DNA from: Dimorphilus gyrociliatus
Taxonomy: Eukaryota > Animalia > Annelida
Reading direction: 5' to 3'
Length of the DNA stretch: 64,000 nucleotides
NCBI GenBank assembly: GCA_904063045.1
Contig: CAJFCJ010000004.1
Coordinates: 122,195 to 186,194 of the forward strand
This document shows, in pieces, positions 5,633-55,355 of this stretch (its first letter is position 1; the number at the start of each line of letters is the position of its first letter). The translations under genes and the position numbers were made by a program. The notes beneath the pieces are model-generated. The model saw only the letters and a list, made by a program, of their open reading frames with translations, had not been told where the DNA came from and searched no databases.

Positions 5633-7363
5633 TCACATAAGAAATGGTATTATTGGTTTTCGTCCTTTGGGATAATTCTTAAATTCTCTCTTGTAATTTC
5701 TGTGTTTACCAGCAGCCCATACAGCCATTTGGTAGAAACCGGCGAACATGAATAAACCAGAAGGTATGGATTGGGTCATAATTGTGAAGAAAAACCAAGA
5801 TCCAACTTCGTATGTGTAGTTGGGGCAGGAAACAAAATTAAAGAGAATCGTAAAGGGATTTGATGTGGGATAAGGAATTTTTCTTTCTTTTGATCCTATA
5901 TGAAGAAAAAAAAATGTTTTTTTGTATGACTGTCAATTCTACTTATACGAACCGGCTGGTCTCAAATTTCGAAGAGCAATGTGGATGGACAGGTTACCCA
6001 GTTCGCATATCTGGAACAGAATAAAAAATACTATTGTATCAGAAATTGAATTATGTTTCTTACAATAAATCCAGCTAATCCAATGTAAATTTGAGTTGTG
6101 CCGAAAACTTAAAAAGAGAAAAACGATCTTTACTATATTGTATTAAAAGAAAAGGAAGTTTTCTTACCTGGCGGCGTGTACAATGGGTGATTAATGTAAT
6201 AGGCTACGTATGCGGCAAATCCCCAATAATAGAACGAGTTCTAAGAGAGTTAAAATTTATAAATTAGAAAAAAGCAAAGTCAAATATGGAATAATACTTT
6301 GAAGATATTTCTAATTGGCATAGTTCCATGAGAAAATCGATGAACAAAAACAGTTTCAAACAATCTTTTCGCGTAATGACCAATCCAACAGAACATTGCA
6401 ATACTTTTTTAAAAGTTGAGAGTACTGTGTTATTTGCGTTGCGGTTGAGAATTAAAAAGAACTTACTCTACTACTGGATGAGTGGGAGCATTGCTATCTG
6501 CATAAATCAACGAAGGTCTCAAATAGAACAATAGGTATGCGAAAAGAGGTCCACTATATTCTGTCAGGAAGACCTATTTCAATTTGAATAGGTTAGTCAG
6601 AATTTTAATTTTAATTTTAATTAGAACTCACAGTTGTCCACCCAACTTGTGGTCCTAAATCTTTAAAATATAATTGTTTAGGATTTCCAACATTTCCGAG
6701 AGTTTCATTGTCTTTCAACATTTTCCCTCCTGAAAGTATTTTAAGTTTTAAGGTTATTGGTTCTCAGTATCAATTTAATCAACTAACTGGGCTCCAAACG
6801 GTAGGATTGACGATCTTGATAATATTTAGAAACTGTTAGGAAAAAAGTAATGTTACTTTTCTCAATGTCTGTACGAAAATCAAGTATCTCGATAAAGCGT
6901 TAGTTATTTTGACTTTTAAAATTAACATCTTCTTAGCATATTGTATGTTTAGTAAAGGTATATACGTGCAAATGTAACTTACACATCCTTTCATAGGCGA
7001 CTTTGACATCTTTAATGGTAGATGATCCTGACAACTGATTTAGTAATATTTCAAAGTATAGAAACATGAATATTAGTAGAGCAACAAAATCATACTTACG
7101 TTATCCAATGTTGCCAGAATTTTGTCATTACGATTCAGGATTTGCACGCTTATGGTCTGAAAATATTTGATCTTGAATGAATAGGCTTAGATTTGAACAT
7201 TGAGCCGGTTGGAAAATTAAGAATCTAGGCTTATAATCATTTAATATATTTAAATCTTTTTGTAGTATCTGAACTTTTAATATTATTTTTATTTGTGTAG
7301 TGTTTTTCAATCACTTATTGCATAATAAATATACAGTTTTTAGCAAAATTTTACCTGAGACAT
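5633..7363 (-). CDS. TECR: Very-long-chain trans-2,3-enoyl-CoA reductase
   Basis: Spliced peptides [50 protein letters not shown] and [13 protein letters not shown]...[24 protein letters not shown] are TECR hallmarks. Confidence 0.93.
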
Positions 7364-50404: not shown

Positions 50405-51440
50405 AAGAAGTGAAGATAGTTTGTTGTACAAGTAAAAATATTAAAGAGTATAGAAAAACTGCTTTCATTTTTTTATGTTGCTGAAAGTTATGGTTCATGC
50501 ATTTGTTGCCCTTTTCTGTTAGAGTAGTGGTTAAAGTTTTTATTGCCCAGGTTTAATAATCTTAATGCCTTAAATTTCAAGTAAACAGTTTGTAGGCACG
50601 TTGTTTAACTTTTTTTAACTGTGAAAATTAAAGATTTGCCCTATATAAACTAACAGTAATCTGTTGAACAAAAGTCAAGTTGCCTTTATTTATTTAAAAG
50701 ACCGCGACACAAAGCAAATTTTTTTTCTTTTGAAAACCTCTGCTATTAAAGCTCGCTTTGTTTGCATACGTACGTATCGAAATTTAGGCCTTTCAAGCAT
50801 TTCCTCAGCTCATAAAAAGAGCTTGAATAATATATAAAAAAAAGGATTTTTTAATATTTTGCCAAGGATTTTAGAGATTTTTAGGGTGCATTTAGCATGC
50901 TTATCACGTTCGTTTCCTTAAAAGCAAATATGGAATTACGTATTACTGCTGCAGTAACTCGACTATATCAATACGTCTCCTCTCTACCTCACTTTAACAA
51001 AGCTTTTATAACTAAAATGAAAATTCCCGTAATCGTCGTAGTATAATAGAAGAAAATTTCTTTTTCATTATTATCAAAGCGCGCAGCATTAGCATTTATC
51101 TGTAGCGAAAATCTCGTAAATCTTAAGAAATAATACTTTCATTGATAACAGTAGACCAGTAATAAAGGGAAAAAAAAAATTTCAAAATGTATTCTCATTT
51201 TAGTTGGCCATCAGATAATATCTCAAAGCTCAAAATTAATTTTCTGTTTTTCTTTTTTTAATTTTTGCAGTATTCGACAGTTTCGCACAGTTCATAATGA
51301 GATTGAAAACAAAAATTGCACTTGTCACAAATGTATTGAATGAAGCGAAATAAGACATCTCTTTCAACTTCAAACACGGACTTTTATACTAATATAAAAT
51401 TGACCAAAGCGAAAGGAAAAGAAAGGAACAAAATAGGAGC

Positions 51441-52293
51441 ACTGATAACGTAAACTCACTAATGAAAAAGAATTTTAATCTTGATTCTTCTGTTTGATCA
51501 GTGACGTACCAGGTAACAGTTGTCACGATTTATATACGACCAAATTAAATAAGCCATATATTTTGAAAAAAGGAATTTTTTGTTGCGTTCCACAGTAAAC
51601 GGCTGATAAATTGGAGTTTGCGGTATACAGAAAACTTTTCAATCGCGTCAATACGAACAATTTTACTGGTTTTGGCAATGGTGTACCAGATGTTATCGAC
51701 CATGCTTCAAACGGACATATTTAATTGCCATTTTTCTTTAATTAATTCATCAGTTGTTTGGCATACGGAGTTCCCAATGCCATGGTAACGCCCAGTACTC
51801 GTAAAAATGTCGTGGGAGACTGTAAATAAACTTATTGATTTTGGTTTTGTTGAAAAATATTAATTTCAACAAACCTGAGGAATATGGAAAAAGAGACGTC
51901 TTTGTTGCATGTTTTGAGTTTAAAGGAATTCTACGTATCTGTGTACAATTATTCCATAAAGCTCATTTATTGACAAATATTTCCAGATCAATTTACCTCA
52001 TTGATGGCCTACAAACCAAAATGGCGGCTCAGATTAAATTTATTTTCATCTTTACTCCAAAAATCTTAAAGAAGGAACTGCAAATAAAATATTATTACAA
52101 ATATAATATTTTTATGTATATAAATCTTTTATTAGAATTGTAAATTAAAAGCTGTTAAATGAAATATTAGGGATGTTTACAAAAATTCCTACCTTTTTTC
52201 TCCACAAAATAGTAGAGGGCGCTACAAAGAGTTTGCAGCCAATCGTACGCAAGATATTATTATAAATTGAATATTCAGCAACGTGGCGGGAAA
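51441..52293 (-). other. Candidate spliced transcript without a long ORF
   Basis: Four canonical-looking minus-strand introns (52192-52078, 51996-51939, 51874-51820, 51509-51442) downstream of E2F and CCAAT motifs. Confidence 0.3.
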
Positions 52294-52791
52294 TTAGCTT
52301 TAATATTTATGATAAGCACTCAAACTCGCGTAAAATATATTGGAAAGATTGTAGGAGTGATCGAAAGTCTGTCCTATGATATATTGATTTCCAATTATGA
52401 CTATATAAATTGAAAGAATACGACACTGTAAGCTTTAGCCTTGGGCTCTTATTTCCAATAAATCAATTTATTAAATGTCTTGACGCCTTCTTTCATTATT
52501 TAGTCCTTAAATTGAATTAGAACTAAGAAAGCTGTATTAATAAAATTGATATATAGAACATTTAGAATGACGATTAGTTGAATTAGCTTTGTTCTCAAAA
52601 AAAAAGAGTCAAACATCAAAATCTCCACGATCTGATTAATAATACTGAAGAGAAGATTAAGGAAATACGTCGGTCCGTCTTCCGAGTTTGGTTTTATCTT
52701 TTTTGTTTTTTTGAAAAAAATATGTCAATTCAGAAAATTGTGAAATTCACTTATGAAAAACAGAATATAGTAGAAATAAATAATTGTTTAA

Positions 52792-53633
52792 TTAATTCAA
52801 GTCGTCTTCGTCGTCAACTTTCAAGCGGGTCTGTTCCTTCTTCTCCCCAGCGTCTATTCTCTCACTCTGTAAGAATAGTTTTCGACTTAATTAGTTTATT
52901 ATTTATGACCTGATTAAACATTTTGTAAAATTACATTGGCATAAACTTGGTTAGCTCTTTGGTTAATATTAAATAAGTTTAAATTGAGTAAATGTTTTCT
53001 TTTTTTTAACTTTAGATTAAAAATAAAATTGCTCGGTAGATGGCGTAGGAAAATTGAACATTTTCCTTTTTTTCAATTGCTTTCATTTTATGATATAGCT
53101 ATACTTTACTATACACTTACTTTAAACTTGTCATTAACCACCCCGGTGTTGTTATTTTGAGATTGAATGTCAGATATATCCCAAACTCGAATGTCGCCAT
53201 CGTGTGAACCAGTCAGTAATCTGCCATCCGTCACCTGCATACAATTTATTGCAAATTGATGGCCTAAAAACGTTCTCTTCAGGGCACCGCCCTTAGCATC
53301 GAACGCTCTAACGACACCGTCGCCACAGGAGGTGAACACTGTTGAATAGAAAGAAAAAAAAAGGTGATATAGCATGCGCTCCGTCTTAAAGAAAAGGTGA
53401 TAAATGATAGTGACACTAGTAAATTTATAATTAATAATTCTAATGGTAAATAATACTAAAGGACAAGGGGGGAAAGCCAAGTGACTTTTCTCATAGCAAA
53501 TGCGGGGTTGAGTCTGAAAGTAGACTGTTTATTCCCAGATCGAAGACAAATAGCATTTCAATAATTGTTCAAAGGTGAATCTATCGACAATCAATTGCTA
53601 GATTATCATTCTTCTCTAATTGAACAATACAAT

Positions 53634-53669
<36 letters not shown>

Positions 53670-55355
53670 TATTTGTACTGTCTGTGTACAGGATATATCA
53701 ATGCTAATTGATATATTCTACATAGACTAATGTATATAGTATAAATTTTATACAGTATATATATACAATACATACAATACATTGAACATATTGTATATAT
53801 TGTATGCATATGGTATACTATAGACTCTAGGGAGAAACATACTACACATATAGTAAATATTATAATAAACATAAGCATGAAATGAAGTGTTTCATCACCT
53901 CAACAGCATTTACGATACTATCATGTCCTACTAAAACTCGTTTTAGGGTTGCAGATTTGGCGTGAAAGACCCTTGTCATCCCATCTCCGGAACCAGTTAT
54001 TACTTGAAAAGAGAATTTAATTAAGTCTTAATGATTTTTCTAGCTTAAGTCAATAAGAGAAAAGACTGTATATTCTCCGTTTCTAAGCTTATTTTCGTAA
54101 TTTTATGATAGTATTATGAAGAATAATAATAAATAATAATATTTTTTGACGTAAAAATTTTTATTATCATAAATACTCACGCAATCCATCGTAGTACTTT
54201 ATGCAGCTGATTGTATGCTTATGACCCTTAAAGTTTCTTGTACAGTCTGCAAACTCTGTAACCCACGCCTTTGCCGTCATATCTGAACTTCCGGTGTACA
54301 TTATTTTATTAACGACTGTCATACAAATAACCGAAGATTGGTGGCCTTCAAAAATCTTTAATCGTTCTCCACTAATAATATCCCAACTTCTGATTGTTTG
54401 ATCCGTCGAACCAGTAAACAAGGTCCGACCACTCTGGTTCGTCGACATACATGTCACCTGTATCAATACAAACAAAATTGATAAATTTACATTGACATAA
54501 TTTGCCTTTATTATACTAAAAGTAACAATAATGTTGTGGTGCCGATAAGAGTCCCGTTTTAAAGTCATTAGGAAAAAACAGGTACTTATTAAGTAATAGA
54601 CACGTCAAGATATTCAACTGCCATATTTTATCTAAATATTTACTTAATCAATAAGTTTGCTTTGGTTATATAGTATATAAGATCGATGTTTTTCTTTTCA
54701 CAAATTCATGGAAATATATTATACTAACGGCTCCCTCATGTTCCTTAAACACTCTTAAACATTTTCCTGTTTCAAAACTCCAACTTCTGGCCGTAAAATC
54801 CGCACTGGCCGTAATCAACAGATCTTTATTACCATCCCAATTAAACGCTTCGGGCGTCACGTCATCATAGTCAGCCGGTATAAAGATCAGAGGATAGACG
54901 CCTCGTTTGTGACCGGAAAATACTCTTATACAATCACCCGTTTCCAGATCCCAACATCTTGCTGTTCTATCATAGGATGATGAAAATACAAAATCGCCCG
55001 TGCATAATATCCTGTTAATTAGTGACTTATGACCTGTCATTATCAATAAACATTCACAGGTCGTCATATCCCATTTCCGTAGTGTCTTATCGGCTGAAGC
55101 AGTAATGGCAAAGTTGTCGTCTATAGCTACAGCGTTTATGTAATCTTCATGGCCCTTTAGCAAACCTATACATTCACTTGTTTCTGTTTTAACTGTCCAT
55201 AATCTGGCTGTCCGATCTTCCGAACCAGTAAGTAATACTGAACCGTCCTCTGATAAGCACATACAATTGATTCCTCCTTCATGGTCATCTAGCGTCTGCA
55301 AGTGCCAGCTCTGAGATGAAGATGAAGTTGAATATTTTGAATTACACAGACCCAT
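52792..55355 (-). CDS. WDR86: WD repeat-containing protein 86 (exons 55355-54729, 54457-54181, 53338-53121, 52866-52792; alternative exon 54002-53899)
   Basis: DDHEGGINCMCLSEDGSVLLTGSEDRTARLW, VFSSSYDRTARCW, TLFTGSTDQTIRSWDI and GHQFAINCMQV..LLTGSHDG..RVWD are colinear with WDR86. Confidence 0.9.

Follow-up and report, generated by a model that had tools for sequence, protein, structure and literature searches.

A duplicated 104-nt WD exon of WDR86 in Dimorphilus gyrociliatus whose partner is fused to the next exon, and a candidate 3' splice site within coding sequence

When an intron next to an alternative exon is lost, the alternative is expected to disappear, as in arthropod myosin genes. 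The WDR86 locus of the annelid Dimorphilus gyrociliatus raises the question of whether an exon choice could survive such a loss, and through which splice site. We analysed a 64-kb stretch of genomic DNA (the window; 64,000 nt), in which all WDR86 features lie on the minus strand. The coding part of exon 1 (54729..55355) begins with the ATG at 55355-55353 and comprises 209 codons up to a GTTAGT donor. Exon 2 (54181..54457) holds 92 codons and the first base of a split codon, followed by a GTGAGT donor at 54180. They encode residues 1-209 and 210-301 of the annotated protein DgyrCDS2667 (CAD5113506.1, 398 aa; P0121), which is made up of exon 1, exon 2, the segment 53338-53121 and the last coding exon (52792..52866; 24 codons and the stop TAA at 52794-52792, forming the C-terminus), with every residue matching. 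The matches to the exon-1 open reading frame are WDR86 proteins of bryozoans, bivalves, annelids, rotifers and arthropods; the top named ones are WDR86 of Bugula, Potamilus, Capitella, rotifers and shrimp (E 1e-80 to 1e-110; precomputed PF00400). Orthology to named WDR86 proteins and WD40 repeats throughout identify the gene as a WDR86 orthologue.

Between exon 2 and the segment 53338-53121 lies a further WD-like segment, hereafter A (53899..54002), which is not part of the annotated product. It is 104 nt long, is preceded by an AG at 54004-54003 and followed by GTGATG, runs from phase 1 to phase 0, and together with the C at 54181 translates to 35 residues. Its GC content is 0.42, against 0.21-0.27 in the flanking introns. 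The counterpart of A, hereafter B104 (53235..53338), has the same length and phase, follows a strong acceptor and ends with a CAG codon at 53237-53235. It constitutes the first 104 nt of a 218-nt exon and continues without a break into 53234-53121 (VTDGRLLTGSHDG...). This constant part of the exon (53121..53234; 38 codons, strands of blade 8) ends at a GTAAGT donor and is homologous to a separate next exon in other spiralians. A and B104 are identical at 51 of 104 nucleotides and 15 of 35 amino acids. When exon peptides were searched by tblastn within the 64-kb window, the best partner of A was B104 (35 bits, E 5e-7), the next WD repeat reaching 25.8 bits; judged by these comparisons, the resemblance is beyond chance.

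As 104 is not a multiple of three, inclusion of both copies or of neither would break the reading frame, and exactly one member is needed per mRNA. If A and B104 are included together, the frame is shifted and a stop arises within B104. A preliminary description of this DNA had given the coordinates and peptides of the two copies, had called them exact-length paralogues, had stated that B104 runs without an intron into the following sequence, and had noted that joint inclusion shifts the frame. All coordinates and peptides were reproduced (35 residues for A, 53338-53235 for B104, 53237-53235 for the CAG); the paralogy was borne out by length, by the 15 of 35 shared residues, by the tblastn ranking and by the same arrangement in seven other spiralian genomes (see below); 53338-53121 is indeed one exon in DgyrCDS2667, and the frameshift with its stop within B104 was confirmed.

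Mutually exclusive exon pairs derived from tandem exon duplication are reportedly catalogued in 'The landscape of human mutually exclusive splicing'. The WDR86 copies share with such pairs the adjacency of homologous exons, their equal length and phase, an exclusivity enforced by the frame (104 nt) and conservation across phyla. They differ in that the downstream member in Dimorphilus has no donor, and choice of the upstream member would need a 3' splice site in coding sequence. Because B104, continuous with 53234-53121, lacks a donor of its own, the Dimorphilus pair departs from one defining feature of mutually exclusive pairs, namely that each copy has its own acceptor and donor. This feature is present in Capitella, Bugula, oyster, the unionids and the two ENA assemblies L002 and L003.

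To place the pair in a wider context, genomic loci of relatives were fetched and the copies were located by tblastn together with a splice-site search. Two copies occur at the same spot of WDR86 in Potamilus, Sinanodonta, Bugula neritina, Capitella teleta, Magallana gigas and the ENA assemblies L002 and L003/L004. In these seven spiralian genomes each copy is exactly 104 nt long, bounded by AG and GT, and runs from phase 1 to phase 0; the second copy is followed by an intron of 175 to about 5500 nt and then by a separate exon starting VV(D/E/G)GKLFTGS or similar. In the oyster, each copy stands by itself as a 104-nt exon, and an intron of 1070 nt lies between the pair and the separate next exon. 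As far as these loci can be read, the WDR86 architecture of the other spiralians is that of a textbook frame-enforced mutually exclusive pair. Our literature search found no paper describing the WDR86 exon pair, which would make it a previously undescribed either-or exon pair that spans phyla.

Evidence that both copies are used comes from several of these species. The oyster RefSeq isoforms X1 and X2 of WDR86 (XP_011414110.1 of Magallana gigas, XP_048778758.1 of Ostrea edulis) differ in the 35-residue segment alone and contain one copy each; in an old M. gigas model both copies run together. The exact oyster X2 protein is also encoded on contigs under 5 kb, and since the gene spans 9.5 kb, these contigs represent spliced RNA. 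A Bugula-like 2-kb contig (a transcript) encodes the first-copy isoform, and the B. neritina model contains the second copy. The models of the two unionids, Potamilus and Sinanodonta, contain a different copy each. Dimorphilus shares with the oyster X1/X2 case the gene, the 35-residue segment and the two-copy arrangement; the difference is that both oyster copies are free-standing exons, whereas B104 is fused.

The pair is not universal. Paralvinella palmiformis has a single 104-nt copy (L011:7813-7916) with the intron behind it kept, which means that the pair was lost at least once within annelids. Penaeus and Centruroides lack a second copy, and their single one is not followed by an intron. 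By identity counts (window 53899-54002 and 53235-53338 compared with L007:5086-5189 and L007:5469-5572), A is closer to the second copy of Capitella and the bivalves, and B is closer to the first copy and to the single arthropod copy. The order of the two copy types may be inverted in Dimorphilus relative to Capitella; a tree of all copies (34 columns) gave no resolution of which copies correspond across phyla. Tandem duplication of a 104-nt exon would have given rise to the old mutually exclusive pair of spiralian WDR86, and A and B104 are very probably members of it, with the fusion in Dimorphilus as the derived state.

Dinophiliformia stand within Annelida as the sister of Errantia plus Sedentaria. 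Capitella, the bivalves and the bryozoan have all kept the intron behind the second copy, so that Dimorphilus has most plausibly lost it. A close relative, L001 (Logan contig of SRR23372228; exon 1 is 96% identical in protein), is likewise fused, and the fusion is also seen in a more distant third species, P0171 (Logan genomic ORF, 91 aa), where a B-type copy runs straight into the next part. These loci indicate that the fusion is derived by intron loss, is common to three dinophilid-like species and is not recent. In the dinophilid lineage to which D. gyrociliatus belongs, the second member would have lost the intron that separated it from the next constitutive exon, leaving B104 as the 5' part of a 218-nt exon. 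Intron loss has marked the D. gyrociliatus genome, in which the median intron length is 66 bp (PMC7854359); despite this, the interval from exon 2 to B has been kept at 843 nt. In P0171, the B104 part is identical to that of Dimorphilus at 30 of 34 residues, whereas identity falls to about one half over the next 24 residues.

Whether A is still functional was assessed by aligning the window to L001, with Nei-Gojobori counts. Exons 1 and 2 have pS of 0.36 and 0.51, respectively, with dN/dS of 0.03-0.05, and a pS of about 0.4 places D. gyrociliatus and L001 far apart at neutral sites. Nevertheless, A differs at only 13 of 104 positions (12.5%), without indels and with its AG and GT kept, whereas the aligned introns show 26.6% mismatches (range 21-40%) and many indels (P = 0.0006 for the lower value in A). 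In a 40-nt sliding window, identity is 90-97% across the acceptor of A and about 45 nt of the upstream intron, and 88-93% across its weak GTGATG donor and about 20 nt of the downstream intron (53875..53898). Outside the A splice sites identity collapses, except in two blocks of the A-B intron (about 53648-53509 and 53494-53386), which are 75-93% identical, against 15-45% with many gaps around them. These patterns indicate purifying selection on A and on its two splice sites, acting in a lineage where the fused exon was already present.

The same comparison bears on the possibility that A is a relic, unused since the intron loss and simply not yet decayed. In accordance with this, annotation and protein collections contain B only. 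The B isoform is the sole annotated WDR86 product of D. gyrociliatus (DgyrCDS2667); the 90% cluster that holds CAD5113506.1 has three members, none of them A-type, and a word search of the protein collection with the B exon matched only genomic ORFs of two relatives, with no A-type product. Moreover, Paralvinella has lost one copy and the arthropods have a single fused one, so the gene works with one version. However, with neutral surroundings that differ by 21-40% and carry indels, the 12.5% divergence of A with no indels, the 88-97% identity of its splice sites and flanks, and its exon-like GC content all speak against decay, and we consider a relic improbable. A still bears the marks of a recognised exon and is probably still spliced into RNA.

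Is A still read as protein? Its pS against L001 is 0.23 and its pN 0.089, giving a dN/dS of 0.35 (one-sided P = 0.06); the differences fall on codon positions 1, 2 and 3 in the ratio 5/1/7 (P = 0.12), and the six replacements are all conservative. The signal points in the right direction but is statistically weak, and on these counts the coding evidence for A is marginal.

To see where A could be joined, we enumerated all 34 AG dinucleotides between the donor of A and the donor at 53121. The frame is kept through to the normal stop by seven of them: use of the four intronic ones would bring in junk sequence along with a second copy, the two within B104 would insert 14-19 extra residues, and one alone of the 34 gives an exact swap. 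This AG lies at 53236-53235, where the Gln codon ends and the former exon border falls (exon start 53234). Dimorphilus therefore has an AG at the position of the lost intron, in frame with the upstream donor, and this AG is also kept in L001. With B104 fused to the next exon, A is usable for an exact swap only via a splice site within coding sequence.

According to an AlphaFold model calculated on 15 orthologues (pLDDT 85.6, pTM 0.81), WDR86 would form an eight-bladed propeller that is closed by its N-terminal strand. In this model the swapped residues 302-336 take in three strands of blade 7 (B, C and D) and the greater part of strand A in blade 8, roughly the strands of one and a half blades. 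The preliminary description had proposed that one propeller blade is swapped; the model gives three strands of blade 7 and the first strand of blade 8 instead. Its statement that the upstream copy can complete the propeller only through the CAG at 53237-53235 holds, this being the only register-preserving AG of the 34. It had also suggested a check of the intron position in other WDR86 orthologues, and behind both copies the exon border of the other spiralians falls at exactly the position that matches 53235|53234. The locus, which it had regarded as an unusual, compact design, appears instead to be the remnant of an ordinary mutually exclusive pair after one intron loss.

Two other ways of using A in frame were considered. 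A joined directly to the last exon (53899 to 52866) remains in frame and reaches the normal stop, but skipping 53338-53121 deletes two strands (B and C) of blade 8, the blade closed by the N-terminal strand. As a terminal exon, A would read on to a stop after VMKHF... (the read-through past A is VMKHFISCLCLL-stop); this open reading frame does exist in D. gyrociliatus, but in L001 a 1-nt deletion throws its tail out of frame, and the sequence after A lacks a canonical poly(A) signal. In addition, the copies join the homologue of 53234-53121 in every other spiralian. Use of A by either of these routes is therefore very improbable.

We infer that A is included in mRNA and that its donor is joined to the internal AG, as had been proposed in the preliminary description; we put the probability of this junction in Dimorphilus at roughly one half. 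By default, 54181 would be spliced to 53338, giving the annotated B protein. When A is included, its donor (53899|53898) would be joined to the AG at 53236-53235, B104 would be removed together with the intron, and a full eight-bladed propeller would result. Inclusion of a cassette exon would thereby be tied to the choice of an alternative 3' splice site, placed at the former exon border.

The 23 nt upstream of the internal AG contain 13 pyrimidines, as do those upstream of the last-exon acceptor (13), with 14 for exon 2 and 20 for the proximal acceptor of B. The last is by far the strongest acceptor in the gene, and it lies between the donor of A and the internal AG, so that use of the internal AG needs a branch point within coding sequence. 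When the sequence of B104 was read by eye, no clean branch-point consensus was found; the best candidate is an A 30 nt upstream, in a U-run.

The strength of the proximal acceptor is also the starting point for the main rival explanation, namely that A is a poison cassette. It would be joined only to 53338, which causes a frameshift and an early stop in B104, and would lower WDR86 output via nonsense-mediated decay, the protein swap having been lost with the intron. The acceptor at 53338 is both the strongest in the gene and the first downstream of A, double inclusion produces just such an early stop, A is conserved most at its splice sites and less in its middle, and neither of the coding tests described above is significant. 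On the other hand, A has been free of stops and indels and WD-like since before the three fused species split. Its branch length is no longer than for copies known to be used, its six replacements against L001 are all conservative, and only one of the 13 changes falls on a second codon position; a poison exon would require none of these features. We regard the poison cassette as unlikely.

A complementarity was observed in this region. The donor region of A (53875-53906) can pair with the proximal acceptor of B together with the first 11 exon bases (53318-53352, minus strand), and the same helix can form in L001 (6064-6096 with 6541-6575). Over 830 nt of pre-mRNA upstream of the B acceptor, no stretch gives it a more stable duplex than the donor region of A (-18.5 kcal/mol in D. 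gyrociliatus, -22.3 kcal/mol in L001). No such donor-to-acceptor helix was found in five spiralians with unfused exons; the helix of Dimorphilus is a putative, lineage-specific one.

The reading in which A is spliced to the internal AG can be carried one step further, more tentatively. The exon choice might have outlived the intron loss, the former border (the Gln codon) having turned into a regulated 3' splice site, and the helix between the A donor and the B acceptor could be the switch; we regard this as possible, though doubtful. Under such regulation, the same 104 nt would be coding in one isoform and would serve as branch-point and acceptor region in the other, B104 being intronic in the proposed A isoform.

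B104 is itself strongly constrained. It differs from L001 at one of 104 positions, and at one of 24 synonymous sites (P = 7e-5 against the background pS of 0.40), whereas pS in the following 114 nt of the same exon is 0.53. This synonymous freeze was considered as evidence for the internal acceptor and rejected, because the unfused second copy of the unionids is frozen as well. In this control (Potamilus versus Sinanodonta), the second copy has a pS of 0.04 (P = 0.001) and the first copy 0.31, like a constitutive exon. The freeze therefore belongs to this alternative exon generally and not to the fusion. It indicates that Dimorphilus still handles B104 as an alternative stretch under regulation. 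When A, B104 and the second copies of other species were folded locally as RNA, the z-scores ranged from -1.9 to +0.9, and so local RNA structure does not explain the synonymous constraint. In the unionids, the strong nucleotide-level constraint on the second copy (pS 0.04 against a background of 0.31) was located at L005:27597-27700 and L010:31053-31156.

Two published systems come near to the proposed event. Exitrons resemble it in that coding sequence is exonic in one product and removed as an intron in the other (PMC4484396). They differ in having both splice sites within one exon, whereas in Dimorphilus only the acceptor is internal and the donor is contributed by the upstream alternative exon; furthermore, the exitron event creates a deletion isoform, whereas the Dimorphilus event would restore a pre-existing exon choice. 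The 'splicing memory' hypothesis for exitrons places their origin in intron loss, after which splicing returns to the former exon border (Marquez et al. 2015, PMC4484396), and splicing memory after intron loss is the closest published idea to the event proposed here. Should both WDR86 versions still be made in Dimorphilus, the locus would provide a natural case of such memory.

The second system is found in arthropod muscle myosin heavy chain genes, where an alternative exon became fused to the next constitutive exon and the alternatives are gone (PMC2257972). Both cases involve loss of the intron immediately behind one member of a mutually exclusive cluster. The myosin fusion left a single constitutive exon at that place, whereas in Dimorphilus the other member, A, persists under selection. 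Since the myosin fusion came with loss of the alternatives, the persistence of A is the unusual point of the Dimorphilus locus. If the proposed splicing is true, a splice site in coding sequence would have preserved an exon choice that dates back more than half a billion years, in an intron-shedding genome, with 104 nt on double duty as protein code and splicing signal.

Downstream of the WDR86 stop (window 51400-52590), the alignment to L001 also contains four non-coding blocks of 80-200 nt (52590-52391, 52070-51971, 51700-51500 and 51480-51400). They are 93-100% identical to L001, compared with 87-90% for the coding exons. One downstream block (52024-52083, minus strand) has a weak C/D-box snoRNA match in Rfam (SNORD58, 29 bits, below the gathering score), the only family match obtained there among these blocks.
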